64,000 nucleotides of DNA, from IMG/VR virus record IMGVR_UViG_3300044633_003049, positions 62,001 to 126,000 of that record, one strand, 5' to 3'. A program made the position numbers and the translations under genes. The notes under the pieces were generated by a model. That model worked only from the letters and a program-made list of their open reading frames with translations. It ran no database searches and was not told where the DNA came from. Shown here piece by piece: positions 9,515-50,589 of the stretch. The stretch's first letter is position 1; every line of letters starts with the position of its first letter.

Positions 9515-9520
9515 TTTATA

Positions 9521-30999: not shown

Positions 31000-31469
31000 T
31001 ATACGTATCTTGTTAAAATTGGTGACGTTATTGCGTTAGCATTTGGAGCAAATAATGTTATATTAACTAAACATGTGGCATTTCCCCACGATACGTTATA
31101 TTGATTTGTAAATCTTAACCAACTTTTACTACCATCACTTGGGTCTTGGTAATATGAGAATGTTATTAGTTGGTCGTTAGTTGGTCCTGATGTAATTTGT
31201 AAACCATATTGTGATAATGCAAACCAAACATTTTGAGTACCGTTATAACTTTGATATGATAAAAAACTAATATAACCTGTTACCCATTGCCAATTACTAT
31301 TATTACAAAGAACATCTGTATATGGTGTGGCGGTATAATATGGTGATATTACAGAAACATTTCCACCCCATTGTTGTAAAGCCATTGGATTAGAACAAAT
31401 TGTACTACTTGCATTTGACGTAGATGTTGCATTGTATGTTGTTGCAGTTGTACCTATTAATGTCGCCAT
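30999..31469 (-). CDS. Small beta-rich fibre-tip paralog
   Basis: MATL start; LSQYGL, WLRFTN, WGN, SPILTRYV. Confidence 0.6.
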   Translation of the reverse strand: MATLIGTTATTYNATSTSNASSTICSNPMALQQWGGNVSVISPYYTATPYTDVLCNNSNWQWVTGYISFLSYQSYNGTQNVWFALSQYGLQITSGPTNDQLITFSYYQDPSDGSKSWLRFTNQYNVSWGNATCLVNITLFAPNANAITSPILTRYV

Positions 31470-34400
31470 TATTTATTTGATTTAAGTTCTTCAATTTCTT
31501 TCTTTAAATCTTTTATTGCTTCAATCAAATATGAAACTACTCTACCGTAAGAAACGGAATCAGGTAATCCTTCTTCATTTTTATTTACCAATTCAGGTGC
31601 AATTTCATTTAACTCTTCCGCTATTAAACCAATCTCTTTAACACCTGTATCTTTTTTAATGTATGAAACACCTCTCATTTTAAGAACATTATCTAAACCA
31701 TATTTTAAAGTTTCAATGTTATCCTTATATCTTACTGATGAGTTTTCTGTTAATGTTCCACCTACTGTTAAGTTACCGGTTGTTGATACTGCACCTGTTA
31801 CCGTTAATGTTGAACCATCAAATGTTAAATTCGCTTCCGCATTTAACGTAACACCACCGACACTTGTCATTACTCTATTATCTACCGCATTTGTGATTGT
31901 TGTTGTACCACTAGAACCTGATGAACCGTTGGTTCCATTACTACCACTTGTTCCTGAACTACCGTTCGTTCCGTTAGAACCCGAAGTACCATTCGTTCCA
32001 TTAGAACCTGATGAACCTGAACTACCATTAGTTCCATTAGAACCTGAACTACCATTTGTACCGTTACTACCACTAGTTCCTGAAGAACCATTTGTACCGT
32101 TAGAACCTGAAGTTCCTGATGTTGCCGCAGTATATGATGTTCCGTTAATATTTAAACTTGTTACACTTAATGAACCTGTAACTTCTGTATTTGTACTAAT
32201 TTTAACAGTTGTACCGTCATCTGAAATATTACTATCACCAAGATGTTCTTGACCTAATGATTTTAATACTCTATTAGTTGTTGGTAAAATCTCATTTCCT
32301 AAACTATTGTAAGTTTGAGCACCTACCATAACTACCGAAGACGTTACGGTTGATTGATTTGTGTGAACATAAACAAACTGATTGTTTAATGAGTCAAATA
32401 AGAATGAACCTGAAACTAATGGTGATGAACCACTATCTAACACTGACAAACCAGCAAATCTTACACCAGGAGATGAAGCGTTAACCGTAATGACATTGTC
32501 ATTTACTCTTAGTTGAGACGCTGTCACATAAATTATTGATGATGACCCTAAAACATTTAAGTTTTGTGTAATTGTTAATGAACCAGTAATTGTTGTGTTT
32601 GAATTAATATTAACTAATGAAGCATTATCGGTTATGTTTGAATTAACCATACTGTTAGACGAGAACTTACCCAAAACATTGTCAGTACCAGAAACTGTAA
32701 CTGAAGTTCCTGAAGAACCATTTGTTCCGTTAGAACCTGAACTACCATTTGTTCCGTTAGAACCACTTGAACCTGAACTACCGTTTGTTCCATTACTACC
32801 TGATGTACCATTTGTTCCATTACTACCTGATGTACCATTTGTTCCATTACTACCTGATGTACCATTTGTTCCACTAGTTCCGTTTGTGCCGTTAGACCCT
32901 GATGATCCGTTACTTCCACTTGTCCCCGAAGAACCGTTGGTTCCATTAGAACCTGATGTTCCTGATGTCATTGAACTAAATGTTGTACCATTAACAGTAA
33001 TTCCGTTTGTGAAATTTGCTGAACCTGATACTATAATATCATCAGCAAAAACAACACTATTACCACCTGAACTTAATATTTTAAATCCGTCTTGAACTAT
33101 AACATTTCCTCTAATGTCAACCGAACCTGTCGTTGGGTCAATTAATATATTACCTCCGCCAGATGATTTCAATTGGATATCTCCATCCGCTGTTTGAAAT
33201 GTAATTGTATCTGTACCTTGTTCTAAAATTTTAATTGATTGACCGTTGTCGGTTGTAATCTGTAATTCTTGATTTGTCGAACCTAATACTTTTTGTCCGT
33301 CAATGTATAAAGATGCACTTGATAAGTATAAGTGTCTAAACGGATTCGTTACCGTACCTAAATCATATGACCCACTACCAAAAGGTATTAATGATCCACT
33401 AAATGTTTGGTCTCCTTTAAATGTGTTTGATCCTGTAGTTGCTAAACCTGATGTACTTGATCCACCTGTGAGTGGTGTTCCATTAACTAATAGACTACCT
33501 GAAATATAAACGTTATTAAATTGTTTTAATGAACTACCTAAATTATATAGACCATTTGCTGATGGTGTTATTGTCCCAACAGCAGATAAATCTTGAGCAC
33601 CTTCTACTTGATGTCCACCTCTAACTATATGAACTTCACCCGCTTGTGCAATTGGGAATGTTATTTGTAAATTGTTTGAATCTATTGATGTTATCTCACT
33701 TGGGATTATAACTTTTCTATTACTATCCCAAACTGTTACACCTGGATAATCAATGTCTAAATTGTGAGCAACAGACCATGTTGTTGCCGATGTGTATGTT
33801 TCTGTATAACCACCAATACCACTAGCACCTGTTGCACCGACACCACCTAATGTGGCAATCACTGTACCTGTTTGTGCAATTGAAAAATATACTTCAATAT
33901 TATTAGAATCTATCGCTCTAATTCCTGTTGGTATAACAACATAACCATCACTATCAAATACTGTAATTGATGGGTATCTTTCATTCATACCATGATTTAA
34001 TGACCATGTGGTTGCCGCAACTGTAACTGTTGTCTTCATTGTTGAACCTGAAACAATAAATGGATTTTCAACATATGAGGCGGTTAAGGCGTATGTTGCA
34101 AATGATGATGTTCCTGCAAATGTAGATGTATTTGAACCTGTATATGTGTTAAATGCCGTTTCGTCTAACTTACCTGTACCCACAACTGCACCATTAACAT
34201 ATAATGATCCAGTAATCTTTACTGATCCAGTAAAATTGTGATTATCGTCAAATGTATTACCAAATGCGGTAGAACCTGATTCATACAATACCGAAGATGT
34301 AACTAATGCTGTGTGAATTTCTTTTGCTGTAAGTGTTCCTGTAATTGTTAAATCACCATTTACTTTTGCGTTATTTGTGGTTTCCCAAACTGAACCTGTT

Positions 34401-35305
34401 AAAGCAAATAAACTATCTCCTGATGTTCCTGATGAACCGTTGGTTCCGTTAGACCCACTAGTTCCAGAACTACCGTTTGTTCCATTACTACCACTAGTTC
34501 CTGAAGACCCGTCTGTTCCATTAGAACCTGATGAACCGTTAGTTCCGTTAGAACCTGAAGAACCATTCGTTCCGTTAGAGCCTGAAGTTCCTGATGAACC
34601 GTTGGTTCCATTTGACCCTGATGTTCCAGAAGATCCTGATGAACCATTTGTACCATTACTACCACTAGTTCCTGAAGAACCGTTGGTTCCGTTACTTCCT
34701 GATGTACCACTTGTAGTTGAGGTATATTCAGTTCCGTTTATATTAAATGAACCTGTTAAATTAATTGAACCTGATAGAACTAAATTATTATTCTCATCAA
34801 GTAACATTTGTCTGTTACCATTTCTACTGAAAACTAAACCATCAACATCGGTTGTTGCACCTCTTGCAGCACCTATCGTCCAATTCTCACCGCTCCAATT
34901 AAAACGAATACCTGCAGCAACTCTATCTGGAGTGTTGAAACTTGCAGGATTGTAAACTGAACTATCAGGTACGAATGCTTGAACATTTGCAACAGGGTCA
35001 GAACCCGAAACGACTAATGATGTTAATGATGTGTTACCTAAAACTTTTAAAGAACCTGTAACATTTAATGAACCCGTAATATTTTCTGTTCCAAGTAAAT
35101 TGAAACTTCCACTTAGATTTAATGAACCTGTGTTTTGAGTATTTGTAGTTAAAACTTCCTCTATTGAGGCTGATAATGATCCTGATTTGGCAAAATATAA
35201 TTTACCATCGGTTGTGTTTATTGCTAATTCTCCTAATTGTAATTGGGAATTGGTAGGCCTATTCCCACCAGTGGAACTTCTACGTAGTTTTACTATTTGA
35301 CTCAT
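31469..35305 (-). CDS. Long tail fibre with Gly-X-Y repeats and C-terminal intramolecular chaperone (peptidase S74)
   Basis: N-terminal KLRRS...GELAINTTDGKLY; three GSNGTNGSS repeat blocks; C-terminal SS.RYKDNI...GLIAEE...L.EAIKDL..EI. Confidence 0.85.
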   Translation of the reverse strand: MSQIVKLRRSSTGGNRPTNSQLQLGELAINTTDGKLYFAKSGSLSASIEEVLTTNTQNTGSLNLSGSFNLLGTENITGSLNVTGSLKVLGNTSLTSLVVSGSDPVANVQAFVPDSSVYNPASFNTPDRVAAGIRFNWSGENWTIGAARGATTDVDGLVFSRNGNRQMLLDENNNLVLSGSINLTGSFNINGTEYTSTTSGTSGSNGTNGSSGTSGSNGTNGSSGSSGTSGSNGTNGSSGTSGSNGTNGSSGSNGTNGSSGSNGTDGSSGTSGSNGTNGSSGTSGSNGTNGSSGTSGDSLFALTGSVWETTNNAKVNGDLTITGTLTAKEIHTALVTSSVLYESGSTAFGNTFDDNHNFTGSVKITGSLYVNGAVVGTGKLDETAFNTYTGSNTSTFAGTSSFATYALTASYVENPFIVSGSTMKTTVTVAATTWSLNHGMNERYPSITVFDSDGYVVIPTGIRAIDSNNIEVYFSIAQTGTVIATLGGVGATGASGIGGYTETYTSATTWSVAHNLDIDYPGVTVWDSNRKVIIPSEITSIDSNNLQITFPIAQAGEVHIVRGGHQVEGAQDLSAVGTITPSANGLYNLGSSLKQFNNVYISGSLLVNGTPLTGGSSTSGLATTGSNTFKGDQTFSGSLIPFGSGSYDLGTVTNPFRHLYLSSASLYIDGQKVLGSTNQELQITTDNGQSIKILEQGTDTITFQTADGDIQLKSSGGGNILIDPTTGSVDIRGNVIVQDGFKILSSGGNSVVFADDIIVSGSANFTNGITVNGTTFSSMTSGTSGSNGTNGSSGTSGSNGSSGSNGTNGTSGTNGTSGSNGTNGTSGSNGTNGTSGSNGTNGSSGSSGSNGTNGSSGSNGTNGSSGTSVTVSGTDNVLGKFSSNSMVNSNITDNASLVNINSNTTITGSLTITQNLNVLGSSSIIYVTASQLRVNDNVITVNASSPGVRFAGLSVLDSGSSPLVSGSFLFDSLNNQFVYVHTNQSTVTSSVVMVGAQTYNSLGNEILPTTNRVLKSLGQEHLGDSNISDDGTTVKISTNTEVTGSLSVTSLNINGTSYTAATSGTSGSNGTNGSSGTSGSNGTNGSSGSNGTNGSSGSSGSNGTNGTSGSNGTNGSSGTSGSNGTNGSSGSSGTTTITNAVDNRVMTSVGGVTLNAEANLTFDGSTLTVTGAVSTTGNLTVGGTLTENSSVRYKDNIETLKYGLDNVLKMRGVSYIKKDTGVKEIGLIAEELNEIAPELVNKNEEGLPDSVSYGRVVSYLIEAIKDLKKEIEELKSNK
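31905..32120 (-). repeat. Gly-X-Y coding repeat (GTS/GSN/GTN/GSS)
   Basis: 9-nt periodic degenerate repeat; coordinates approximate. Confidence 0.9.
32700..32968 (-). repeat. Gly-X-Y coding repeat
   Basis: 9-nt periodic degenerate repeat; coordinates approximate. Confidence 0.9.
34418..34712 (-). repeat. Gly-X-Y coding repeat
   Basis: 9-nt periodic degenerate repeat; coordinates approximate. Confidence 0.9.
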
Positions 35306-35326
35306 ATATATGTGTTCTAAATCCTT

Positions 35327-35361
35327 GTGATATATATCACGGTTAACGACCTATGTAGGTC
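35327..35361. promoter_or_regulatory. Three adjacent palindromes in the leader of the fibre gene
   Basis: GTGATATATATCAC (35327-35340), GTTAAC (35342-35347), GACCTA-TG-TAGGTC (35348-35361). Confidence 0.45.
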
Positions 35362-35365
35362 TTAT

Positions 35366-35373
35366 TATAAATA
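35366..35373 (-). promoter_or_regulatory. TATTTATA putative phage promoter
   Basis: Recurrent motif upstream of starts; here directly after a terminator. Confidence 0.55.
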
Positions 35374-35385
35374 CATTTAATAAAT

Positions 35386-35414
35386 AAAAAAGGAGACTTT
35401 TTTACGGTCTCCTT
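35386..35414 (-). terminator. Intrinsic terminator
   Basis: AAGGAGAC-9nt-GTCTCCTT stem followed by a T-run on the minus strand. Confidence 0.8.
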
Positions 35415-35432
35415 GAATGTTTTTATTTATTG

Positions 35433-37373
35433 TTAATATTTTGCGGCTATTGAGTTAACTCTATTGTTCATTATGGTATTACCATTTGTTGTTGCTGACC
35501 AAGTTAAACCGTCGGTTGATGTTGCCAATTGATTTGGTCCTCCTACACCGCCCGCAACCCATTTAGTACCGGCCCAAGTTACACTTAACGCCGAGAATGA
35601 GAATATTGTGTTTCCGTTTGTAGATCCCGACCATGTTATACCATCAGATGAATATGCCAATGCGTTTGTACCTTGTCCTGCGGCAACCCATTGTGAACCA
35701 TTATATGATATACCATAACCAGTACCTGAGATTCTGCTATTTCCACTTGTTGAACCTGTCCATGTTATGCCGTCTGATGAATATGCGATTCTATTTGCAC
35801 CTGTACCAACTGCAACCCATTTATCACCACCCCAAACTACATTATTACATGATCCTGTAAATATTGTACCACTGTTTGCGGATGCCGTCCAAGATATACC
35901 ATCATCTGAATATGCTATTGTTGTTCTATTTCCAGTACCACCAGCAGGTGATGAACCTACCGCAACCCATCTACTTCCATTATATGCCACAGTATTTGGT
36001 ACACTACCAATTACATTCGAATTTGATGCCGCTGTCCAAGTTATACCATCTGTTGAATATGCAAATTTGGCGGCGCCTGATGAAATACCGACCGCAACCC
36101 ATTTATCTCCTCCATATCCTATACCTCTAACATTTGTTGTAAACATGGATGAACCATTTGTTGATCCCGACCATGTATTTCCATCAGAAGACCAAAGTAA
36201 AGCATTTGAATTACCTCCACCTGCAGTTCCTCCTGCAACAAATATATTTCCATCAGTTGCAACGGCAAGTGCCGGTTGGGTTATAAATGTGGCACCATTA
36301 GATGAATTTGTCCAATTATCACCACCATCATATGAATAACTTAATACGTTTACAGCACCCGCAGCAACAATTACATTAGTCGTCATTGATGTTGCTGTCG
36401 GTGTTATTGTTGGTGTTGGTGTATTGGTAGGTGTGTTAGTTGGTGTGATACTTGGTGTTACCGTATTTGTTGGTGTATTTGTTGGAGTAGGAGTAGGAGT
36501 TTCGGTATTCGTAGGAGTTGGTGTTAATACTTCAGTTTCTGTAGGAGTAGGAGTAGGAGTTTCGGTATTCGTAGGAGTTGGGGTTGGAGTTATATAAGTA
36601 CTCTCACAATCATTACATCCACCAGTTCCAAATGATGTGGTAAACGCGTCGTCTATCGGAGCATTTATCTTACCAATGACTGAATAACACCCACTTGGTG
36701 TTGCTCCTGTGAATGTGTAATAGTTTACATCTCCAAGAACTATAAATCCTGGTCCTAAATCGACAACTAAAACATTTAGATTAGTACATCCTGAAATTGT
36801 GTATGTAGTTATTGAACTCGAATCAGTTGGAGTTGGAGTTGGTGTATTCGTAGGTGTTTCTGTTGGAGTATTAGTTGGTGTTGGTGTTGTAGTATTGGTA
36901 GGTGTTGGTGTAGGTGTATCAGGAATTATTTCACTAGATGTTGGAGTTGGTGTGACTGTTGCAGTTGGTGTAATAGTTGGTGTTGGGGTTGGAGGTGGTG
37001 CACCTTCACCATATGATGTGAAATGACCATTATCATTTAACCAAGTTTTAGCATCAGTTGCATTTGTAAATGGTTCTAAACCATCTGTTATTGGTAAAAC
37101 GTTTAATAACTCTAATAAAGATTGTTCTGTTAAATCTGTTGATCTCCAGAAATTAATATATGAATCCTCATCTGTCGGTGTTGGATGATTTCCCGTTGGT
37201 ACTTGGTTGGCAATAACATAACCTAACTCTTCATCAGGTCCCATCCACCATTTAACCCCACCTGGATTTTGTGAATAATCTTGTTCTGAAACACCTATTG
37301 CGATGTTTCCAATTTGTGTTGTTCCATCTATGGTGGATCCTGTGTTGTATGCGAAGGGTCTTGTTGTTGCCAT
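35433..37373 (-). CDS. Pro/Thr mucin-like stalk protein with C-terminal Asp-box beta-propeller
   Basis: TPTPT repeat tracts; repeated YSxDGxTW Asp-boxes and KWVAVG blades. Confidence 0.75.
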
Positions 37374-37380
37374 TATGTTA

Positions 37381-37388
37381 TATAAATA
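37381..37388 (-). promoter_or_regulatory. TATTTATA putative phage promoter
   Basis: 7 nt upstream of ATG 37373. Confidence 0.55.
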
Positions 37389-37398
37389 CTTTTATTTT

Positions 37399-39093: not shown

Positions 39094-39099
39094 ATAAAC

Positions 39100-39107
39100 T
39101 ATAAATA
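39100..39107 (-). promoter_or_regulatory. TATTTATA putative phage promoter
   Basis: 6 nt upstream of ATG 39093, downstream of a terminator. Confidence 0.55.
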
Positions 39108-39128
39108 TATTATATTGTCTTTATGGAT

Positions 39129-39158
39129 AAAAAAAGGAGGACTTTTTGAGTCCTCCTT
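39129..39158 (-). terminator. Intrinsic terminator
   Basis: AAGGAGGACT-loop-AGTCCTCCTT followed by a T-run on the minus strand. Confidence 0.85.
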
Positions 39159-39177
39159 GTTAATTTTTATTCTACTT

Positions 39178-42100
39178 TTAGAACGTTCCTCCGTCTATTG
39201 TATCGGTGAAGGTTAACGTTCCGTCAGATGTTTTATAACCTAACATTGATGTAACCGCCACACTTGAAGATGTTGCTGAAATCTCACCAAATACATCAGT
39301 TGAGTTTTTGAATGTTACAGTTGAGGTGTTTGTACCCGCATCTGCACCATTTCCACTTACTTTCAATGTACCCGCTATTACTGTGTTTCCTGATGCTGAT
39401 TCAACTGTGAATTTATCTGTGTTGAATTGTAATGTTGTACCTGAGTAAGTTAATAAACTATCAGTAATTGTATTATCAGCCGATGCGATTGGGAATGTTC
39501 CACTTGTTAAACTTGTTTCACTTCCTAATGTTGCTGCAGTTGTTCCAACTATTTTACTTGAACTATTTGAACCGTTTACAGTTAACCATTTGTTATTAAG
39601 AGAATCCCATAATAATGAACCTGATTGATCCGCTGAACCTGAATCATATCCACTGATACCTGCGTATCTTTGGAATGGTGAGTAAGCGTTTACTAATATG
39701 ATATTATCACCGATTGCTACTGTATTTGATTGTAAACTTACATTTGTTGATGAACCTAATACTTGTAAGTTTCCTGATACAAATAAATCACCACCTAAAC
39801 TTGTTAATGAACCTGAACCAACTGTGAACGCTCCTGTAACACTTGTATTACCTTGTATATTTGTTTTTCCTGTTACAACTAAATCTGAATTAACTGTTAC
39901 ATTTGTTCCATTATCAACTATACTTGAATCTACTAATGTGATTGTTGCTCCTGTTGAATCAAATTTACCAATGTAGTTGTTTGTACCTGTTACTGATACT
40001 GATGTACCTGACGTACCATCTGTACCATTTGAACCACTTGTTCCTGAAGAACCATCAGTACCATTACTACCTGAAGTGCCATCTGTTCCGTTTGAACCAC
40101 TAGTTCCTGAACTACCATCTGTTCCGTTTGAACCACTAGTTCCTGAACTACCATCTGTTCCGTTAGAACCTGAGCTACCGTCCGTACCATTAGAACCACT
40201 AGTTCCTGAACTACCATCTGTACCATTTGATCCTGAACTACCATCTGTTCCGTTAGAACCAGAACTTCCGTCAGTACCATTTGAACCACTTGTTCCTGAA
40301 GAACCGTCGGTGCCATTACTTCCTGATGAACCTGAAGAACCATCTGTACCATTAGAACCTGATGAACCTGATGAACCTGATGAACCATCTGTTCCATTAG
40401 AACCTGATGAACCTGAAGATCCGTCTGTACCATTAGAACCTGATGAACCTGATGAACCATCTGTTCCATTAGAACCTGATGAACCATCTGTACCATTAGA
40501 ACCTGAACTACCATCTGTACCATTTGATCCACTAGAACCTGATGTACCATCAGTACCATTTGACCCACTAGAACCTGATGTACCGTCGGTACCATTACTT
40601 CCTGATGTACCTGAAGTTGCTGCGGTATATGATGTACCATTAATTGTTAAATCACCACCAACTAAATTTATTGATCCTGAAACTAAAACTGAACCAGTGA
40701 ATTGGTGATTATCGTCAGGCGTATCTCCGAATTTAGTTGAACCTGAAGTATATAACACTGAAGATGTTACATAATCAATATGTAATTCTTTAGCAGTTAA
40801 TATACCATTAATGTATGTGTCTCCATTTACTCTGAATGTTCCATCAGATTGAATTGATGCACTTACACTTCCACTTACTATTTTGTTTAATTCTAATCCT
40901 GTAACTCCACTTGCTGGAATGTTATATAATCCACCTCCATCTCCAGTAAATGAACCTGATATTGTTCCAGTTTTTACTGTTAATGAACCTGTTATTTCTA
41001 CATTGTTTGTTGTTCTCCATATTCCAGAACCTAAACTTGTTTCGGCAAATAAACTATCTCCTGATGTACCTGAAGAACCGTCGGTACCATTACTTCCTGA
41101 AGAACCATCAGTACCATTAGAACCTGAACTACCGTCTGTTCCGTTAGAACCTGATGAACCTGAAGAACCATCTGTACCGTTTGACCCACTAGAACCTGAA
41201 GTACCGTCTGTTCCATTAGAACCTGATGAACCTGATGAACCTGAACTACCATCTGTTCCGTTAGACCCAGAACTTCCGTCAGTACCATTTGAACCACTTG
41301 TTCCTGAGGAACCGTCGGTACCATTTGAACCTGAAGAACCATCGGTACCGTTTGACCCACTTGTTCCAGAACTTCCGTCTGTACCATTAGAACCTGATGA
41401 ACCTGAAGAACCGTCAGTTCCGTTTGACCCACTTGTTCCTGAAGAACCATTACCACCAATAGTGGCAATTACCGTACCTGTTTGAGCTTCGTTAAAATAT
41501 ACTTTTAAGTTATTACTATCAATAACGTGAATTTCCGTTGGTATTACAACTTTATCACTACCATCAAACACATTAACCGCTGGATATTTGTATCCTAAAT
41601 TGTGGTTGAATGACCATGTTGTTGATGCTGAACCAATTACTAATGTTTTAGTTTGACCTGAAACAATTACAGCGTTTTCCGCATATACTGCATATGATGC
41701 TGAAGTTGCAAATGATGCTGTACCTGCAAATGATGAGGTAACTGAAGATGTATAAGCGTTAAATGCTGTTTCATCTAATTTACCCGTACCAATTGCTTGA
41801 CCGTTTAATGATATTGAACCTGTAATATTAACACTACCTGTAAATTGATGTGTATCATCTAACGTATCACCAAATCTATTTGAACCTGAAGTAAATAACA
41901 CTGAAGAAGTCACATAATCCATGTGTATTTCTCTTGCTGTTAATATACCATTGATATTAACATCTGAACTAATTGTAACAGTTGTACCATCATCACTAAT
42001 ACTTGAATCTACTAACGTTGTAGTTGCTCCTGTTTGGAATTTACCAATTGTATTGTTTGTACCACTTACAGTTACCGATGTACCTGAAGAACCGTCGGTA

Positions 42101-43560
42101 CCATTACTTCCTGATGAACCTGATGTACCATCTGTTCCGTTTGAACCAGAAGTTCCTGAACTTCCATCGGTACCATTAGAACCACTAGTTCCTGAAGAAC
42201 CATCTGTTCCGTTAGACCCCGATGAACCATCCGTACCATTTGAACCTGAAGAACCATCCGTTCCGTTTGACCCACTAGAACCAGATGTACCATCAGTACC
42301 ATTTGAACCTGAAGTACCTGAAGAACCGTCGGTACCATTAGAACCTGAAGTACCTGAAGTCATTGCTAAGAATGAAACTCCGTTTATTGTTAAATCACCT
42401 TCAGTGATATTAACTGAACCTGAAAGAATATTTATTGATCCTGTAAATTGGTGTGTGTCATCGTTAGTATCTCCGAATTTAGTAGATCCTGAAGTATATA
42501 ATATAGATGAAGTAACATAATCAATATGTAATTCTTTCGCAGTTAATATACCGTTGATGTATGTATCACCGTTTACTCTGAATGTTCCATCAGATTGTAT
42601 AGACGCACTAACTGAACCGCTTACTATTTTATTTAATTCTAATCCTGTAACTCCTGAAGCTGGAATGTTATATAAACCCCCACCATCACCTGTAAATGAA
42701 CCTGATATTGTACCAGTTTTAACAGTTAAAGAGCCTGTAATTTCTACATTATTGGTTGTTGTCCATATTCCAGAACCTAAACTTGTTTCAGCAAACAATG
42801 AATCTCCTGATGTACCTGAAGAACCGTCTGTTCCGTTTGATCCTGAAGAACCATCCGTACCATTAGAACCTGAAGAACCGTCAGTACCATTAGAACCTGA
42901 AGAACCAGAACTTCCGTCTGTTCCGTTTGATCCTGAAGAACCTGAACTACCGTCTGTACCATTAGAACCTGAAGAACCGTCGGTTCCATTACTTCCTGAT
43001 GTGCCTGAAGAACCGTCAGTTCCGTTACTTCCTGATGAACCTGATGTACCATCTGTTCCGTTTGAACCTGAAGTTCCTGAAGTTGCTGCCGTATATGATG
43101 TTCCGTTTATAAATAAACTACCCGTAACATTTAAAGAACCACTTACATTAACTTGACTACCGAATGTTGCGGTTGTACCTGTTAAATTAGTAATTGTTAC
43201 ACCACTGATAGTATTACCTTCAATGTTACCAACTAAATTTAATTTGACATTACCACCCGCACCGTCATTATTTAATATGTATAATTTATTTTCACCACTA
43301 GCGTAGAATGGTGTACCGTCTAATGTTGAACCATACGTTCCCGCAGAAATCGTTGGTGCATTAGCTCCTTGATACATCTTGGACACCGCCTTAAATGCAC
43401 CTGCAACTCCTTCATCTCCAATTGCTGGTGAACCGATAAAGATAAAAGGACCTGATAAGTCATTTATCGAACCGGTTGCGATGATTAATTCACCATTTCT
43501 TGCCGTTGTATTTTTGAGGATTTCTAACGAACCCCTCCTGTGTTTAATAATTTGTGCCAT
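39178..43560 (-). CDS. Long tail fibre (1460 aa) with four Gly-X-Y repeat blocks
   Basis: N-terminal IKHRRG...GELIIAT; GSNGTDGSS repeats; FGDxxDDxHxFTGS modules; C-terminal IDGGTF. Confidence 0.8.
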   Translation of the reverse strand: MAQIIKHRRGSLEILKNTTARNGELIIATGSINDLSGPFIFIGSPAIGDEGVAGAFKAVSKMYQGANAPTISAGTYGSTLDGTPFYASGENKLYILNNDGAGGNVKLNLVGNIEGNTISGVTITNLTGTTATFGSQVNVSGSLNVTGSLFINGTSYTAATSGTSGSNGTDGTSGSSGSNGTDGSSGTSGSNGTDGSSGSNGTDGSSGSSGSNGTDGSSGSSGSNGTDGSSGSNGTDGSSGSNGTDGSSGTSGDSLFAETSLGSGIWTTTNNVEITGSLTVKTGTISGSFTGDGGGLYNIPASGVTGLELNKIVSGSVSASIQSDGTFRVNGDTYINGILTAKELHIDYVTSSILYTSGSTKFGDTNDDTHQFTGSINILSGSVNITEGDLTINGVSFLAMTSGTSGSNGTDGSSGTSGSNGTDGTSGSSGSNGTDGSSGSNGTDGSSGSNGTDGSSGTSGSNGTDGSSGTSGSNGTDGTSGSSGSNGTDGSSGTSVTVSGTNNTIGKFQTGATTTLVDSSISDDGTTVTISSDVNINGILTAREIHMDYVTSSVLFTSGSNRFGDTLDDTHQFTGSVNITGSISLNGQAIGTGKLDETAFNAYTSSVTSSFAGTASFATSASYAVYAENAVIVSGQTKTLVIGSASTTWSFNHNLGYKYPAVNVFDGSDKVVIPTEIHVIDSNNLKVYFNEAQTGTVIATIGGNGSSGTSGSNGTDGSSGSSGSNGTDGSSGTSGSNGTDGSSGSNGTDGSSGTSGSNGTDGSSGSNGTDGSSGSSGSSGSNGTDGTSGSSGSNGTDGSSGSSGSNGTDGSSGSNGTDGSSGSNGTDGSSGTSGDSLFAETSLGSGIWRTTNNVEITGSLTVKTGTISGSFTGDGGGLYNIPASGVTGLELNKIVSGSVSASIQSDGTFRVNGDTYINGILTAKELHIDYVTSSVLYTSGSTKFGDTPDDNHQFTGSVLVSGSINLVGGDLTINGTSYTAATSGTSGSNGTDGTSGSSGSNGTDGTSGSSGSNGTDGSSGSNGTDGSSGSNGTDGSSGSSGSNGTDGSSGSSGSNGTDGSSGSSGSSGSNGTDGSSGSSGSNGTDGSSGTSGSNGTDGSSGSNGTDGSSGSNGTDGSSGTSGSNGTDGSSGSNGTDGSSGTSGSNGTDGSSGTSGSNGTDGTSGSNGTDGSSGTSGSNGTDGTSGTSVSVTGTNNYIGKFDSTGATITLVDSSIVDNGTNVTVNSDLVVTGKTNIQGNTSVTGAFTVGSGSLTSLGGDLFVSGNLQVLGSSTNVSLQSNTVAIGDNIILVNAYSPFQRYAGISGYDSGSADQSGSLLWDSLNNKWLTVNGSNSSSKIVGTTAATLGSETSLTSGTFPIASADNTITDSLLTYSGTTLQFNTDKFTVESASGNTVIAGTLKVSGNGADAGTNTSTVTFKNSTDVFGEISATSSSVAVTSMLGYKTSDGTLTFTDTIDGGTF
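39998..40617 (-). repeat. Longest Gly-X-Y coding repeat (~200 aa)
   Basis: GSNGTDGSS units; coordinates approximate. Confidence 0.9.
41059..41455 (-). repeat. Gly-X-Y coding repeat
   Basis: GSNGTDGSS units; coordinates approximate. Confidence 0.9.
42075..42360 (-). repeat. Gly-X-Y coding repeat
   Basis: GSNGTDGSS units; coordinates approximate. Confidence 0.9.
42805..43083 (-). repeat. Gly-X-Y coding repeat
   Basis: GSNGTDGSS units; coordinates approximate. Confidence 0.9.
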
Positions 43561-43581
43561 CTACTTTGTGTTTGTTTTGTT

Positions 43582-43589
43582 TATAAATA
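43582..43589 (-). promoter_or_regulatory. TATTTATA putative phage promoter
   Basis: 21 nt upstream of ATG 43560. Confidence 0.5.
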
Positions 43590-43661
43590 GTGTATTTTAC
43601 TACATCCACCGAATTATTTCTATTGTTTTTTAATATATTTTTATTATTAATTTGTTTTTTT

Positions 43662-46163
43662 TTAAAATCCTCCCAAATCCATGACACTTCCAGTACCCAT
43701 ATCATATGTTATTACTCTTTGTCCTTGCATTGAAAGTGACGCGGATATCATTTGTGATTGAATTTGAGCTTGCATAATAGCTATTGCTCCTGATACTATT
43801 AATGACTCTCTTAATGGATCCGAAGCAGTTAATATTGTTGTACCATTAACTGTTAGGTCACCATTAATAACAACTGAACCTGATGTACGTAATGAACCAG
43901 TAAACAGATGTAAATCATCTGATGTATCTCCAAACTTAGTCGAACCTGATGAATAAAGAACTGAAGATGTTACATAATTAATATGTAATTCTCTCGCAGT
44001 TAATGTACCGTCAATATTAACATCAGTATTAACTCTTAACGTACCGTCAGCCATTGAAGCACTTACACTTCCACTAATGATTCTATCTAATTGTAATCCT
44101 GTAACTCCTGTAGCTGGAATGTTATATAAACCTGCACCGTCTCCTTTGAAAGATGCGGTAATAAAACCACCATTCTCAATGTATATGTTAGAACCACTTG
44201 TTAATACTAATGACGCACTTTCATTTAATAAAACATTTGCGTCATTAATACCTAATTGAGAAGATATACTTAATGAACCTGTAATTTGGATATCGTTTGT
44301 TGTTGTCCAAACACCTGGTGATGTTTCAGCAAATAATGAATCTCCTGATGTACCTGAAGTTCCGTTAGTACCATTACTTCCACTTGTACCAGAACTTCCG
44401 TCGGTACCGTTAGAACCTGAAGAACCATTTGTACCATCTACTCCTGATATACCTGAAGAACCTGAACTACCATCTGTACCATTACTACCACTTGTTCCCG
44501 AAGAACCATCGGTTCCATTACTTCCACTAGTTCCTGAAGAACCATCTGTTCCGTTGGAACCTGATGAACCAGAACTTCCATCTGTACCATTACTACCCGA
44601 TGAACCATCGGTTCCATTACTTCCTGAAGAACCTGAAGTACCGGAAGAACCATCAGTACCATTACTACCCGATGAACCATCGGTTCCATTACTTCCTGAA
44701 GAACCTGAAGTACCATCCGTACCGTTAGAACCACTTGTACCGGAACTACCATCGGTACCGTTTGAACCTGATGTTCCTGATGTCATTGCGGAGAATGAAA
44801 CTCCGTCTATCGATAAACTACCGCTTACTATGTTAATTGACCCCGAAACAAATACCGAACCTGTAAATTGATGTGTATCATCATGTGTGTCACCAAATTT
44901 GGTTGAACCTGAACTATATAATACTGATGAAGAAACTAATGTAACATTATATTCTTCCGCAGTTAAAACACCTTTAATTTTTACTGAACCCGTAATTTCT
45001 ACATTGTTGGTTGTTGTCCAAAAAGAACCACTATTCGCAAATAAAGAATCTCCTGAGGTTCCCGAACTACCATCAGTTCCATTAGAACCTGAAGTACCGG
45101 AAGAACCATCAGTACCATTACTACCTGAAGTACCATCTGTTCCATTACTTCCTGAAGAACCATCCGTACCGTTACTTCCTGAAGTACCTGAACTACCATC
45201 GGTTCCATTTGAACCACTAGTTCCTGAAGAACCGTCAGTTCCGTTAGAACCTGAACTTCCGTCTGTACCATCTACCCCTGATATACCTGAAGTACCTGAA
45301 GATCCATCGGTACCATTACTACCACTAGTTCCTGAACTACCATCGGTACCATTACTTCCACTTGTACCAGAACTTCCGTCGGTACCGTTAGAACCTGAAG
45401 TTCCGTCTGTACCATTAGAACCTGAAGTACCTGAAGAACCATCGGTTCCGTTTGAACCTGATGAACCACTTGTACCAGAACTACCATCACTACCTGAAGT
45501 ACCTGAAGTACCATCAGCACCACTTGTACCTGATGTACCTGAAGATGATGCTACAGATGTCACTAACGCATCTTTTAATGTTCTACCAACATATTGATAT
45601 GCCGTTATGTAAACATATTTTGTATTATCAGGGGCATCTGCAGTTAAAACAAACTGAAGAACACCCGTTTTATAATCAAATACAAATTTTGTAGGGTCTA
45701 ATTGATCACCGGCAGATGGTGAAGATGAGTTAGTTGAAACAAAAACTTTAACACCATAACCCGCTGGACTGTCTTCCGCGTTGGCGGTAGATAGTGAGGG
45801 GATTGAATATTTTGGTGATATGAAGTTTTTTTGTTGATTGGAATCAATTAATTGAGCATCGATACCTGCCGTAGTACCTGTAGTAAAAAACCAAACTTGG
45901 TTATTCGTACTTGATTTGGTCATCTTGTAACGATAGTAATACTTCATTACTTGTTGACCACCTGAAGAATAAATTGATAAATTGTCTCCACTTGTTCCAA
46001 AAGGAACGCTACTTACTGGTATTAAATCTTGATCTACATAAATCTCATTAGCATTAATATCCAACACCGAAGTGAAAGCTTCTTGAGCATCGGTAAAAGT
46101 TTCGTGTGTGTATCTTCTACTTTGGAGTAACCTTGGGGATTTTTTACTGTTATCTATCGACAT
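43662..46163 (-). CDS. Tail fibre-like structural protein (833 aa) with Gly-X-Y repeats
   Basis: Globular N-terminus (FDYKTGVLQF, YQYVG); two repeat blocks (~45050-45550, ~44340-44785); C-terminal DLGGF. Confidence 0.75.
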   Translation of the reverse strand: MSIDNSKKSPRLLQSRRYTHETFTDAQEAFTSVLDINANEIYVDQDLIPVSSVPFGTSGDNLSIYSSGGQQVMKYYYRYKMTKSSTNNQVWFFTTGTTAGIDAQLIDSNQQKNFISPKYSIPSLSTANAEDSPAGYGVKVFVSTNSSSPSAGDQLDPTKFVFDYKTGVLQFVLTADAPDNTKYVYITAYQYVGRTLKDALVTSVASSSGTSGTSGADGTSGTSGSDGSSGTSGSSGSNGTDGSSGTSGSNGTDGTSGSNGTDGSSGTSGSNGTDGSSGTSGSNGTDGSSGTSGISGVDGTDGSSGSNGTDGSSGTSGSNGTDGSSGTSGSNGTDGSSGSNGTDGTSGSNGTDGSSGTSGSNGTDGSSGTSGDSLFANSGSFWTTTNNVEITGSVKIKGVLTAEEYNVTLVSSSVLYSSGSTKFGDTHDDTHQFTGSVFVSGSINIVSGSLSIDGVSFSAMTSGTSGSNGTDGSSGTSGSNGTDGTSGSSGSNGTDGSSGSNGTDGSSGTSGSSGSNGTDGSSGSNGTDGSSGSSGSNGTDGSSGTSGSNGTDGSSGTSGSNGTDGSSGSSGISGVDGTNGSSGSNGTDGSSGTSGSNGTNGTSGTSGDSLFAETSPGVWTTTNDIQITGSLSISSQLGINDANVLLNESASLVLTSGSNIYIENGGFITASFKGDGAGLYNIPATGVTGLQLDRIISGSVSASMADGTLRVNTDVNIDGTLTARELHINYVTSSVLYSSGSTKFGDTSDDLHLFTGSLRTSGSVVINGDLTVNGTTILTASDPLRESLIVSGAIAIMQAQIQSQMISASLSMQGQRVITYDMGTGSVMDLGGF

Positions 46164-46169
46164 TTCTTA

Positions 46170-49100
46170 TTAACTAAAAGTTGTTGTTATTGATGTTATT
46201 GGCGTTGGGTCCCCCTTGTATCTTACAATTACATAAATATTAGTATATGTAGCGTTTAGTATCATACCATCCGCACTAATTAATGGTATTGTGTATGTAT
46301 TACTTGAAACTGAACTTGTGTTACAACGATTTACGTATATACTTGAACCAAATGGATTTGTTCCGTCAGTATTTGCAGTAATTGTTCCTAAGTTTGTTAA
46401 AGCATTTGATGGGTCAAAAAATCTTGGTGGTGTATATAAACCACTCTTTGTCGATTCAAATAAAATTAATGATGAAACAGAATTACTTGTTGTTGAGTCC
46501 CAATTTACAAGTGCCGTTCCCATGTTTAAAGTCATTGTAAGTTTTACTCCCGCGTTGGTTGTAACTTTTCTAACATAATATTTGTAATCACTTGTATCAC
46601 TTGGATTTTCTAACCAATACTTGTAAGCTCCACCAGGTTTAACTAAGAAACCAGGTTTAACTTGTAAATCGTTTGCACCTAAATTATATAAACCAAATGC
46701 AGTATCCCAAGCTGTTCCTGTGAATGATAAAATATTATCACTTAATTGTATTCTATTGTTTTCACCAAGGAATGGTTCAGAGTTAGATGCCCCACCATTT
46801 GTTGCAGTATCACCTGTTTGTGGTCTACCATAATACGCTAAACTACCACTCGCACTTGGTTGTCCAAATGTACCCGCCGTATGATAAGAAACTGTTGATG
46901 TGTTTGTTGTTGTACTTCCACCTTTATTTAATCCATTTATTTGTAATGAAAAAGATGTTGTACCTAAACCTGTTTGACTTATATTTTCATCAGACGCTGT
47001 AGGTGCAAATGAAGATGTTGTATATACTTTTACAATATCAGTTTCATAAGGAACCGTTCCTGTACTTCTAACAGTTACACCTGTAGAATCATAAACTGCG
47101 TTTGCAGTTTGTATTGTTCCTCCCGCAGTTGATACGGTTAATACTCCACCCGATTCAGTTACTAACGCATCAGAATCTGTAATTGTTGCAATACCCGTAC
47201 CAGCATAATATAAAGGATTAAACAATCCTAATACTGAACCCGATATTGTATATGTTGCCGAACTTAAATAAGGTGCTCCACTCAATGAACGAGACACTGC
47301 GGTTATTCCATTAACACTCACACCACTAAATGTAGGTGTCTGTGCCGGTATGTTTGTTGATATTGTTGTTAATGGTGCGTAAAATATTTCAGTACTACGT
47401 GTTTGTGGTGTTGTATATGTACTTGATCCACTAGCTATTGCAATAGACGACGTTATATGATAATAACCACTTCCACTAATTGCAGTTGCCCCTGCGTTAT
47501 AAATTGCCGGTGAGAAAACCGTTACATATTTACCATCTTGATATGCTGCAGGAATAACAGCAGGATTTGCCGTGTTAATCTTTGCTAATGTAACTCCGTT
47601 AGTTGTACCAGCACCTGTTTGTGTAATGAGTGCCTGTGAACTTGAAGTTGCCGTATCTGTTTTAGAACTATTATCTTTAAATTTAAAGGTGAATGAACCC
47701 GAAACTTTAAATGAAGTTGGAGTTCCACTACTTAATGTACCTAAACCGAATAATTGAGAGTCAACTGATGATGAAACTATTGTAGAACCACCGGCAACAC
47801 TCGTATACGTTTCGTAATATCCTGAATTAGTATAAATTGGAGAAATACCACTGAAGATTGTTGAACCTGTGGTTGCAAAACCTTTACTTTGTAAGTAAGT
47901 AATTGTTGGATTACTTGAGTTTAATGGTATACTACCAACCGTAACCGTTCCCGTCGCATTATTATTAGGGACTGTTGTATATGAACTATATGTTTTTGTA
48001 TTTGGTGCTGCGTCAGGTGCTGAAGATGATAATAAACCAGCAACAAATCTTAATATTTCAGAAACATCTGTATTTTCATTGAAGTTATTAAAATAAGAAC
48101 CATTTAAACTTGATTGCCATGGATTTGATGTTGGAACACCTACGTTGATGTTTTCAGCATGTATTGATTGTGATACCGATAATGCATATTTGTTACTGAC
48201 ACTGCCATCAGGTGAGTTTAATAAAACTTCACTACCTGTAATTTCTTGATTTCCTTTTAGAGTTATTGACCCTGTAACTAAAAGTGAACCTGTAAATAAA
48301 TGTGTATCATTTTGACTGTCACCGAAATTAGTCGAACCGCTCGCATATTGAACGGTCATGTTGGTAACCGACGACGATACTATTAATTCGTTAATGGTTA
48401 ATTTACCATCAATTGTTACGTCATTTTTTGTGTACCAATTTGAACCTGTTAATGCAAATAAACTATCACCAGAAGTTCCTGAAGAACCATCACTACCTGA
48501 AGTACCAATTGCCCCATCTGACCCACTCGTTCCAGACGTTCCTGATGTACCATCTGTTCCATTAGAACCACTCGTTCCTGAAGAACCATCACTACCTGAT
48601 GTTCCATCTGTTCCATTAGAACCACTCGTTCCTGAAGAACCGTCCGTACCATCTACACCAGAAATACCCGATGTACCATCACTACCTGATGTTCCACTTG
48701 AACCGTCGGTACCATTAGAACCTGAAGTGCCATCCGTACCATTAGAACCTGAAGTACCGGAACTACCATTCGTACCATTAGAACCTGATGTACCTGAAGA
48801 ACCATCCGTACCATCACTACCTGAAGTACCTGCCGTACCTGTCAAACCAGGTACACCTAAAGGAATGATTAAAAACTCATCATTATTATTTGGAGTTGTT
48901 CCACCGACTGATAATTGACTAACTGTATATTTTTCATACCCACTATCTAATGGGTCAACAACATCAATTTTTAATAATTTAAATGTTGTTGCGTCCCCTA
49001 CTTTAACTAATTTTAAAATTGTTCCAATAGTTAATCCGTCTAAATAAGATTCAAAATCTTGATTTGGTGAATATGCAACATTATCTATTGAAATACTCGT

Positions 49101-49916
49101 TGTTGATGTTAACCAAGCTGCCGAATTTAAATTGAAATATCCACTTCCTGGATCAACACTTGTGTTTGTGTTTCCACTATATCTCCAAATTGCTAAATGT
49201 CCTTCATATCCTGCATATCCACTTGTACCTGATGTACCATTTATACCACTTGTGCCTGATGTACCACTTGTTCCAACTCCACTTGTACCTGAAGTACCAT
49301 CTGTTCCACTTGTTCCTGAAGTACCATCTGTTCCGTCACTTCCATTAATTCCAGACGTACCATCAGTACCGCTTGTTCCTGATGTACCATTTATACCACT
49401 TGTGCCTGATGAACCATTACTACCTGAAGAACCATTAGACCCACTAGTACCTGATGTACCATCTGTACCATTAGAACCTGAAGTACCACTTATTCCACCT
49501 CCAGTACCACCTGTTATTGTAACTATTACATCACCATTACCACTATCGGTAACCGTAGCACCACTAAATGTAATTTTATCAACATTATTAATTGTTGTTG
49601 TTCCGTCTGTTAACGTAATTGCCGTACCCGTACCACTTGTACCTGAAGTTCCTGAAGAACCAGTACCACTAGAACCTGAAGTTCCTGATGTACCAGCAAC
49701 ACCTGAAGAACCACTTGTACCTGAAGAACCTGACAATCCACCGGTACCACCAGTACCTCCTGCCGCAATTAAAGCTGTAACACTTGTTCCGGAGATATAA
49801 AGATTGTCCGCATATACCGCATGTAATGAACCAGATGGAGAACCTAAGTTAATTGTCGACCCCGAAGGGACGTTCTCGGTATCAACTTGGGTCCAATTTA
49901 TTTTTTGTAATGCCAT
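46170..49916 (-). CDS. Large fibre/structural protein (1248 aa) with Gly-X-Y repeats and Ser/Thr-rich beta C-terminal region
   Basis: GTSGS/GTDGT repeat blocks (~48470-48840, ~49220-49490, ~49620-49760); FGDSQNDTHLFTGS module. Confidence 0.7.
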   Translation of the reverse strand: MALQKINWTQVDTENVPSGSTINLGSPSGSLHAVYADNLYISGTSVTALIAAGGTGGTGGLSGSSGTSGSSGVAGTSGTSGSSGTGSSGTSGTSGTGTAITLTDGTTTINNVDKITFSGATVTDSGNGDVIVTITGGTGGGISGTSGSNGTDGTSGTSGSNGSSGSNGSSGTSGINGTSGTSGTDGTSGINGSDGTDGTSGTSGTDGTSGTSGVGTSGTSGTSGINGTSGTSGYAGYEGHLAIWRYSGNTNTSVDPGSGYFNLNSAAWLTSTTSISIDNVAYSPNQDFESYLDGLTIGTILKLVKVGDATTFKLLKIDVVDPLDSGYEKYTVSQLSVGGTTPNNNDEFLIIPLGVPGLTGTAGTSGSDGTDGSSGTSGSNGTNGSSGTSGSNGTDGTSGSNGTDGSSGTSGSDGTSGISGVDGTDGSSGTSGSNGTDGTSGSDGSSGTSGSNGTDGTSGTSGTSGSDGAIGTSGSDGSSGTSGDSLFALTGSNWYTKNDVTIDGKLTINELIVSSSVTNMTVQYASGSTNFGDSQNDTHLFTGSLLVTGSITLKGNQEITGSEVLLNSPDGSVSNKYALSVSQSIHAENINVGVPTSNPWQSSLNGSYFNNFNENTDVSEILRFVAGLLSSSAPDAAPNTKTYSSYTTVPNNNATGTVTVGSIPLNSSNPTITYLQSKGFATTGSTIFSGISPIYTNSGYYETYTSVAGGSTIVSSSVDSQLFGLGTLSSGTPTSFKVSGSFTFKFKDNSSKTDTATSSSQALITQTGAGTTNGVTLAKINTANPAVIPAAYQDGKYVTVFSPAIYNAGATAISGSGYYHITSSIAIASGSSTYTTPQTRSTEIFYAPLTTISTNIPAQTPTFSGVSVNGITAVSRSLSGAPYLSSATYTISGSVLGLFNPLYYAGTGIATITDSDALVTESGGVLTVSTAGGTIQTANAVYDSTGVTVRSTGTVPYETDIVKVYTTSSFAPTASDENISQTGLGTTSFSLQINGLNKGGSTTTNTSTVSYHTAGTFGQPSASGSLAYYGRPQTGDTATNGGASNSEPFLGENNRIQLSDNILSFTGTAWDTAFGLYNLGANDLQVKPGFLVKPGGAYKYWLENPSDTSDYKYYVRKVTTNAGVKLTMTLNMGTALVNWDSTTSNSVSSLILFESTKSGLYTPPRFFDPSNALTNLGTITANTDGTNPFGSSIYVNRCNTSSVSSNTYTIPLISADGMILNATYTNIYVIVRYKGDPTPITSITTTFS

Positions 49917-50271: not shown

Positions 50272-50274
50272 AAA

Positions 50275-50580: not shown

Positions 50581-50589
50581 TTTATAATT

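Follow-up and report, generated by a model that had tools for sequence, protein, structure and literature searches.

The window analysed here is a 64,000-nt stretch (positions 62,001 to 126,000) of the IMG/VR virus record IMGVR_UViG_3300044633_003049, which is 211,784 bp long, has 31% GC and comes from an uncultured jumbo myophage of lake water. In it lie six co-directional minus-strand genes, four of which (gA, gD, gE and gF; 31469-49916) encode proteins with blocks of collagen-like Gly-X-Y repeats. With a block taken as at least six uninterrupted Gly-X-Y triplets, a script run on the translations returned 13 blocks of 8 to 68 triplets, amounting to 453 triplets and 1359 residues between window positions 31901 and 49757 (Table 1); the count becomes 12 if two gF blocks that are 2 residues apart are merged. 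This re-derivation agrees with an earlier, sequence-only reading of the same DNA, which had reported about 12 blocks in four genes, with Gly at every third residue, over 31905-49760. Two further collagen-like fibre genes are situated outside the window: g603 (genome 36890-38701) and g776 (genome 148809-151139). All six fibre proteins share one plan, in which Gly-X-Y blocks alternate with junction modules between an N-terminal and a C-terminal domain.

The composition of the blocks is severely restricted. Their 1359 residues include 458 Gly, 444 Ser, 210 Thr, 125 Asn and 95 Asp, along with one Pro and no Lys or Arg, so that neither imino acids nor charge pairs are available as stabilisers at X and Y. 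The sequence-only reading had allowed no Pro, Lys or Arg at all; this is correct for the two basic residues and misses a single Pro, in a GVP triplet of gF block 4. Position X is Ser (218) or Thr (208) in 426 of the 453 triplets (94%), and position Y is mostly Ser (226), Asn (125) or Asp (89). The two positions are restricted differently: Thr occurs almost only at X (208 of 210), whereas Asn and Asp are placed at Y (125 of 125 and 89 of 95, respectively). On recount, the commonest triplets are GSS, GSN, GTS, GTD and GTN, the same main types (GTS, GSN, GTN/GTD and GSS) that had been named before. Within the blocks of gA, gD and gE, Gly is never lost in 365 triplets.

All four proteins score well above the gathering cut-off of the Pfam Collagen family (PF01391; 95-239 bits against 27.2, E 1e-27 to 1e-72), and their PHROG matches are to “tail fiber” and “collagen like minor tail” families. 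Both results uphold the previous assignment of the repeats to the collagen type. A PDB sequence search with the fibres found only animal collagens and a Pro-rich “spindle/axial fibril”; the alignments to solved collagens agree almost only at Gly, and these Gly-only matches are uninformative for the fold. The borders of the blocks are conserved motifs. The lead-in is INGTSYTAATS, and the lead-out is of two kinds: GTSGDS followed by LFA..TTNN, at a type 1 junction, or GSSGTS followed by (V/I)T.SGTNN..GKF, at a type 2 junction. Long open frames on the other strand or in other frames over the arrays (among them window 39977-40708, 40883-41485 and 44887-45597, all three on the plus strand) are by-products of the repeat composition and not genes.

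Table 1. Features of the window, with coordinates counted from its first nucleotide.
Feature	Position	Strand	Description	Family evidence
gA (P0001)	31469..35305	-	1278 aa; three blocks (86 triplets), junction modules, C-terminal S74	Pfam Collagen E 1.8e-32; Peptidase_S74 E 1.4e-9
gA block 1	34412..34708	-	33 triplets (aa 200-298)
gA block 2	32702..32962	-	29 triplets (aa 782-868)
gA block 3	31901..32116	-	24 triplets (aa 1064-1135)
gA Peptidase_S74 domain	31586..31741	-	aa 1189-1240; endosialidase-type intramolecular chaperone	Pfam
gB	35433-37373	-	between collagen-like genes
gC	37399-39093	-	between collagen-like genes
gD (P0002)	39178..43560	-	1460 aa; four blocks (175 triplets)	Pfam Collagen E 1.8e-72
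gD block 1	42799..43077	-	31 triplets
gD block 2	42076..42354	-	31 triplets
gD block 3	41053..41457	-	45 triplets
gD block 4	40000..40611	-	68 triplets, 204 residues; longest of all
gE (P0003)	43662..46163	-	833 aa; two blocks (104 triplets)	Pfam Collagen E 1.7e-45
gE block 1	45045..45539	-	55 triplets
gE type 1 junction module	44778..45044	-	aa 374-462; predicted trimer clamp between the two blocks
gE block 2	44337..44777	-	49 triplets
gF (P0004)	46170..49916	-	1248 aa; four more irregular blocks (88 triplets)
gF block 1	49659..49757	-	11 triplets
gF block 2	49272..49496	-	25 triplets
gF block 3	49194..49265	-	8 triplets; set apart from block 2 by a 2-residue interruption
gF block 4	48462..48857	-	44 triplets; holds the sole Pro
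GT7 (beta-4-galactosyltransferase-like) + LamG fusions, two tandem paralogues	21181-22599, 22596-24047	-		Pfam Glyco_transf_7N/7C, Laminin_G_3
Twitch-domain radical SAM proteins, two	16165-17613, 18383-21184	-		NF033640, ~300 bits each

Selection on the repeats acts on the protein, and synonymous sites have become almost random. Gly, Ser, Thr, Asn and Asp have the same codon usage inside the blocks as outside them. Each triplet type is written with 13-25 different 9-mers, Ser being encoded by both TCN and AGY codons, and the peptide unit GSNGTDGSS, which occurs 57 times, is spelled by 49 different DNA versions, whose mean nucleotide identity is 0.78 (some 6 differences in 27 bases). The arrays delimited by Tandem Repeats Finder have a DNA identity of only 60-90%. 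The degeneracy of the codons and the protein-level selection deduced from it in the earlier note are thus confirmed by these counts of 9-mers and DNA versions. With synonymous divergence near saturation and Gly nonetheless kept in gA, gD and gE, simple recent slippage is no explanation for the repeats; as the sole source of the period, recent DNA slippage is ruled out by that divergence.

Variation in repeat length, read from orthologues, leads to a similar picture. Near-identical orthologues of gE range from 53 to 106 triplets, and in each of them the triplets form two in-frame blocks without interruption. Repeat number is free, and the Gly period is fixed. Beyond these orthologues, metagenomes contain more than 1048 homologues of gE at E <1e-10. 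In all 83 homologues with at least 20 triplets, Ser makes up at least 40% of Y residues, and 66 of the 83 have no Pro. Selection maintains the three-residue Gly period and the hydroxyl residues at both X and Y; judged from the homologous sequences, the pattern conserved across the family is Gly-[Ser/Thr]-Ser.

These facts bear on the notion that the blocks are flexible, disordered tethers whose Gly period is merely left over from expansion of a 9-nt unit. A low-complexity composition of Ser, Gly, Thr and Asn is typical for disordered linkers, the arrays do expand and contract, and the Gly-X-Y flanks in the structural model described below lack a confident model. Yet no Gly has been lost in the 365 triplets of gA, gD and gE while synonymous sites approached saturation, and orthologous blocks stay uninterrupted despite their change in length. 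Further, the different restrictions on X and Y would be needless in a structureless linker, and the borders are conserved at both ends of the blocks. We consider a tether of this kind rather unlikely.

The junction modules that separate the blocks are predicted to act as trimer clamps. The type 1 module has the core motif YVxSSxxYxSGSTKFGDTxDDxHxFTGS and is repeated within and between the six fibre genes (gA, gD, gE and gF in the window); it matches no Pfam family. Members were found in 4451 clusters of a representative library, in proteins of up to 5012 residues. Because Gly-X-Y blocks occur in just 5 of the 141 best representatives that carry it, type 1 reads as a general phage fibre module, and the collagen-like spacers between its copies as insertions made by this lineage. 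The domain is very common among phage fibres yet undescribed. At the C-terminal ends, Peptidase_S74 domains are present in gA and in the 603-aa protein of g603 (E 2e-17), and g776 has an S74 motif by eye; gD, gE and gF are without a C-terminal Peptidase_S74, and the C-terminal 763-aa region of gF has no family match. The S74 family drives the folding of trimers and then cleaves itself off.

Structure prediction is consistent with a trimeric arrangement. When gE residues 326-510 were modelled in three copies with ESMFold2, the score was 0.63, against 0.00 for the best control; this mark was attained by 21 of 30 same-chain-pair proteins and by 0 of 23 single-chain proteins in a calibration made with two copies, not three. 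The confident interface in the model is the junction module, residues 374-458. An AlphaFold2 monomer of the same module, built from a 31-sequence alignment, was extended and had no assigned secondary structure (pLDDT 71, pTM 0.33), and so weak a monomer model is in keeping with a fold adopted only upon trimerisation. The conserved junction module is therefore predicted to form a trimer, and the blocks, going by this model and by the S74 domains, sit in a trimeric context. Trimer modelling had been put forward in the earlier note as a check on the repeats themselves; it gave a trimer at the gE junction module and no confident placement of the Gly-X-Y flanks. From the trimeric context and the period of the blocks we infer that the latter most likely form triple helices.

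The same context disfavours another suggestion of the sequence-only reading, namely that the repeats form a polyglycine-II bundle of the snow-flea antifreeze type, possibly with ice-binding activity. A Gly-X-X period with small residues and a cold freshwater habitat would suit such a fold. Bundles of the snow-flea type, however, are compact monomers in which short segments with ~45% Gly are joined by turns and held by disulfides. The blocks found here run for 24-204 continuous residues with neither turn motifs nor Cys, their Gly content is exactly one third (33%), and they are embedded between trimeric fibre modules in proteins that Pfam and PHROG place with collagen-like tail fibres. Of all the explanations that we weighed, this one is the hardest to credit.

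In its main idea, the sequence-only reading had treated N-glycosylation sequons as the organising principle of the repeats and N-glycans as the stabilisers of a triple helix. Its observation that almost every Asn stands in N-G-T or N-G-S is accurate and can even be strengthened, as all 125 of the 125 block Asn do so; the phage also has many glycosyltransferases. But the pattern is forced. With Ser or Thr at 94% of X positions, any residue at Y is automatically followed by G-S/T, and the sequon carries no independent information. Further, Asn is found at fewer than 5% of Y positions in 18 of the 83 homologues with at least 20 triplets (for example, P0026, with S43 A8 D6 N1 at Y, and P0104, with S141 D2 L1), and Asn and Asp alternate between paralogues at one repeat position, which is GTN in gA and g603 and GTD in gD, gE and g776. 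By these comparisons, Asn is dispensable in the fibre family and an acceptor Asn is not conserved among the homologues. No match to STT3/PglB (PF02516) or to GT41/HMW1C-type enzymes (PF13844) was found in the 212-kb record, which is ~63% complete. Oligosaccharyltransferases act outside the cytoplasm, but phage fibres assemble and fold within it.

The N-G-S/T sequons are a by-product of composition, their reading as N-glycosylation sites is attractive but misleading, and a helix stabilised by N-glycans is very improbable. What remains of the proposal is that glycosylation in some form is plausible, given the island of glycan genes and the protein O-glycosyltransferase described below; N-linkage is not supported. 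As Gly follows each Asn of the blocks, all of these Asn stand in Asn-Gly, which of all dipeptides deamidates spontaneously most readily. Rods built on GTN would be neutral, and those built on GTD would have one negative charge per 3-4 triplets.

A candidate for modification of a different kind is P0276, a 998-aa protein encoded inside the glycan island (L003:771-3764:-), 67 bp from the fibre gene g603. It consists of a GT4 domain, an FkbM methyltransferase and a C-terminal TibC-like domain (residues 640-998), which is the only copy in the record. The latter domain is a full-length homologue of the TibC/Aah (BAHT) enzymes: it aligns with residues 38-386 of the 406-residue chain of TibC (PDB 4RAP; E 2.5e-59), with Asp110, Thr226, Lys230 and Trp305 identical and Arg286 replaced by Lys, and all four iron-finger cysteines (Cys339, Cys342, Cys358 and Cys370) are aligned. 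In TibC, Asp110 is the catalytic base, and Thr226, Lys230, Arg286 and Trp305 bind the sugar (PMC4358343). Pro300, which determines the heptose stereoselectivity of TibC, is Gly in P0276. P0276 scores 287 bits against the NCBIfam equivalog TIGR04414 (cut-off 200) and 28 bits against lipopolysaccharide (LPS) heptosyltransferase I. TibC/Aah enzymes hyper-heptosylate Ser, not Thr, in the repetitive fibrous domains of autotransporters; they do so in the cytoplasm, and they act on peptides too. In contrast to them, P0276 is phage-encoded and fused to GT4 and FkbM domains, and the gene beside it codes for an S74-bearing collagen-like fibre, not an autotransporter passenger.

This association of a TibC-like gene with a collagen-like fibre is conserved. 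Scanning IMG/VR with the TibC-like domain yielded 30 viral loci (26 distinct), and 23 of the 30 have, within 10 kb of the TibC-like gene, a gene for a collagen-like protein of the G-[ST]-S type that is free of Pro. The two are immediate neighbours in ~10 distinct contigs, with gaps of 51-109 bp. The pairing persists where TibC identity has fallen to 47-50%, across three or more gene neighbourhoods and with fibres of 350 to 3086 residues. In fibres that adjoin TibC-like genes, Y is Ser in 140 of 141, 108 of 115 and 91 of 93 triplets; being nearly pure Ser at this position, these fibres contain no sequons. Among the loci without a nearby Gly-X-Y gene are fragments: five of the records, all fully searched, are only 16-32 kb long, and two of the five hold a collagen-like gene elsewhere. 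Around bacterial TibC homologues, no Gly-X-Y block was found within 8 kb at any of 13 loci, and 6 of the 13 have large open frames (at least 700 aa) with 12-20% Gly. The bacterial relatives in a genome scan have at most 37% identity and are confined to Negativicutes and Paraburkholderia, which gives no clue to the host. Some relatives have two TibC-like genes (L026, a 335-kb contig, at 3312-4439 and 8957-11077), and such genes also occur in “uncultured phage” records of 636-735 kb in INPHARED (LR756501, LR756503 and LR756504). P0276 is the leading candidate for the probable O-glycosylation of Ser in the fibres, and the glycosyltransferase evidence points to O-linkage on Ser in preference to N-linkage. 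Our literature search found no paper on phage collagen-like fibres with heptosyltransferases.

A cultured example exists in the Microcystis phage Mel-JY01 (PP395634.1), which has an FkbM + TibC-like fusion with 46% identity. Two genes upstream of the fusion is a Ser-rich structural protein of 508 aa with two type 1 junction modules, and before that protein runs a plus-strand frame of at least 1016 residues (L058:2-3049:+) with 202 G-[TS]-[SRDG] triplets and short GPP caps. The collagen-like frame is unannotated in GenBank, where antisense frames (PVPEVPE...) are annotated as proteins instead. We found no paper on Mel-JY01 in the literature. The phage offers a cultivable laboratory system in which glycosylation of the fibres could be tested.

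Considering these results together, we lean towards the view that the proteins form homotrimeric fibres with trimer-clamped, length-variable spacer rods of the collagen type, and that these rods are probably O-glycosylated on Ser by phage enzymes. In each protein, proline-free Gly-[Ser/Thr]-[Ser/Asn/Asp] blocks would alternate with trimer-forming junction modules and would serve as thin, hydrophilic, triple-helical spacer rods between trimeric knobs. The flanking trimeric modules and, in some fibres, the C-terminal S74 chaperone would hold the rods in register. Collagen rises by ~0.29 nm per residue; at this rise, 31 triplets would span ~27 nm and 68 triplets ~58 nm, and gD would have ~150 nm of rod in all. 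Changes in repeat number would alter the length of the fibre in whole-triplet steps. Phage enzymes would O-glycosylate Ser in the cytoplasm, and the sugars could hydrate and stiffen the rods, or mask them.

Several points weigh against this proposal. Triplets of Ser, Thr, Asn and Asp reportedly have a low triple-helix propensity on the host-guest scales of Persikov et al. 2000, as the earlier note had rightly stated. The stability of the rods would consequently have to come from clamping at their ends, from hydration of the hydroxyl groups and, plausibly, from O-glycans on Ser. In the three-copy model the Gly-X-Y flanks are not confidently placed, and the overall pLDDT is ~58. TibC-like genes are also found beside same-module fibres that have no Gly-X-Y repeats (the 508-aa structural protein of Mel-JY01 and the L030 orthologue), and the acceptor may thus be Ser in junction or beta-structured parts instead of the repeats. 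The four fibre genes of the window are 52-73 kb away from the TibC-like gene. The heptose pathway, which would supply ADP-heptose as the donor for a TibC-type enzyme, is not encoded in the record: neither a SIS-type (SIS_2) heptose isomerase nor a PfkB-type heptose kinase was found in it, and its one nucleotidyltransferase is ambiguous. The pairings come from related phages and are not phylogenetically independent samples. Finally, by analogy, the glycan island could serve to remodel the host surface, the function proposed for the “LPS” genes of cyanophage P-SSM2 (PMC1079782).

Some of these points favour a triple-helical spacer that is left unmodified. Such a spacer would be stabilised by its clamps, by hydration of Ser and Thr and by the low temperature of the lake, and the TibC-like and glycan enzymes would act elsewhere, on other fibre parts, host glycans or the capsid. 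The trimeric context and the strict Gly period are as expected for it, TibC-like genes do accompany fibres that lack Gly-X-Y blocks, phage “LPS” clusters have been read as host-surface modifiers (PMC1079782), and polar, hydroxyproline-free bacterial collagens are reportedly stabilised by hydration networks (PMC8968730). Against it, Ser at Y is the most conserved feature apart from Gly, especially in TibC-adjacent fibres, and Ser is the residue that TibC modifies; nor does an unmodified helix have Pro or charge pairs to offset its low propensity. We regard it as a possibility of real but secondary weight. About as tentative is a more specific form of the glycosylation proposal, in which a phage enzyme of the TibC/Aah family would hyper-O-glycosylate the Ser residues of Gly-[Ser/Thr]-Ser fibres to make a glycan-stabilised “glyco-collagen” rod that is widespread in freshwater jumbo phages. 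If true, the TibC/Aah family would gain its first substrate class outside the autotransporters, and bacteriophages their first known glycosylated collagen.

The glycan-gene island extends over ~65 kb, from genome 20 kb to ~86 kb (window 1-24 kb), and abuts the fibre cluster. Its sugar genes comprise six SDR dehydratase/epimerases, three DegT aminotransferases, a C-methyltransferase, a carbamoyltransferase, an APS kinase and a UDP-glucose dehydrogenase, and its glycosyltransferases are of the GT2 (5-6 copies), GT4 (3), GT7, TOD1/MUCI70-like, DUF5672 and Anp1-like kinds. The island may be the reason for the label “provirus” that IMG/VR gives to the record. The pair of GT7-LamG fusions forms the fibre-proximal edge of the island; their architecture is unusual for a phage, and neither fusion matched an NCBIfam model. 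The two radical SAM proteins are placed between the sugar genes and the fibre cluster. Five genes for 2-oxoglutarate-Fe(II) oxygenases (prolyl-4-hydroxylase-like, PF13640) are present among the 73 genes scanned at genome 21-93 kb, one of them at window 8452-9063 (minus strand). The collagen-like blocks offer such oxygenases no Pro or Lys; the Pro-Thr linkers of gB and gC, or Asn and Asp, could be their targets.

The genes gB and gC both encode long runs of Pro-Thr linker, a classic O-glycosylation-type sequence. The C-terminal part of gB contains a series of SxDGxxW (Asp-box/BNR-like) repeats, which suggests a beta-propeller, and gC has two concanavalin-A-like (LamG) lectin domains (Laminin_G_3 E 5e-18). 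Both proteins are probably accessory fibre or glycan-binding parts.

Among the genes of the record as a whole are those of a tail sheath and of a family-B DNA polymerase. CheckV estimates the completeness of the record at 63%, and related contigs reach 334-335 kb. Its DNA turns up repeatedly in metagenomes of lake water and freshwater dated 2020 to 2025. A megablast of INPHARED with 23 kb of the window found no match, and the best tblastn matches of the polymerase, in phages of Salinibacter, Anabaena and Nostoc, have only ~23-27% identity, so that no close cultured relative or host can be assigned. The part of the record outside the window contains no tRNA genes. An AAA ATPase is encoded at window 50590-51678, the same position as in the relative L021. 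There, the stretch 3585-6150, immediately upstream of the fibre genes, codes for a NusG-like protein, an AAA ATPase, a thioredoxin and a glutaredoxin. The open reading frames that flank the ATPase in the window (49999-52582) match their L021 neighbours in size.

Collagen-like sequences in phages are not new. Smith et al., in “Bacteriophage collagen” of 1998, are said to have described Gly-X-Y segments in phage tail fibres. In the cyanophage P-SSM2, Gly-X-Y makes up 49% of one gene (orf028), and the genome has 24 sugar (“LPS”) genes as well (PMC1079782). The fibres described here resemble these and other phage collagens (those of E. coli O157 prophages and of PHROG 1806) in that Gly-X-Y repeats occur, with non-collagen flanks, in fibres that are trimeric there and predicted to be so here. 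They differ in having essentially no Pro and no charge pairs, with Ser or Thr at X and Ser, Asn or Asp at Y; in their up to four blocks per protein and six genes per genome; and in the conserved protein O-glycosyltransferase that accompanies them.

By analogy, the closest functional counterpart is the BclA filament of Bacillus anthracis and B. cereus, along with BclA1 of C. difficile. It too is a length-polymorphic collagen-like filament, trimeric as the phage fibres are predicted to be, and the fibres have a weak sequence match to BclA (PDB 1WCK); O-glycosylation of hydroxyl residues is known in BclA and would be shared by the phage fibres on our proposal. The glycans of BclA are thought to aid hydration and stability (PMC8968730). 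BclA differs in its GPT triplets (Pro at X, Thr at Y) and its C1q/TNF-like trimerising domain, and in being a bacterial spore protein.

There are precedents for viruses that glycosylate their own surface proteins, as the genes of this phage suggest that it may do. In mycobacteriophages, glycosylation is on capsid and tail-tube proteins, at their C-terminal tails, and not on collagen-like fibres. In the cuticle of the vent worm Riftia, an analogy drawn in the earlier note, a hydroxyproline-poor triple helix is stabilised by O-glycosylated (galactosyl-Thr) residues. Thr in that collagen is at Y, after Pro at X; the phage blocks have it at X, and their candidate enzyme belongs to a family that targets Ser. 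The giant virus Mimivirus hydroxylates and glycosylates its own collagen (PMC8968730), in which the glucose is linked to hydroxylysine. Two things are new here: a large uncultured family with an extreme G-[ST]-[SND] composition free of proline and, as judged from gene neighbourhoods, the conserved pairing of that family with a protein O-glycosyltransferase of the BAHT family.

Although collagen-like segments have been known in phage fibres since 1998, a triple helix that holds without Pro, hydroxyproline or charge pairs would still call for an explanation. The present family, with more than 1000 metagenomic members, is an extreme natural test case, in which trimer-clamped Gly-[Ser/Thr]-[Ser/Asn/Asp] repeats would use repeat number as a length dial. 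The conserved pairing narrows “maybe glycosylated” to a named enzyme, a residue and a cultivable phage. If confirmed, glycosylation of these fibres would widen the substrate range of the autotransporter heptosyltransferase family, define a new class of glycosylated virion structure and supply a design rule for proline-free collagen mimetics.

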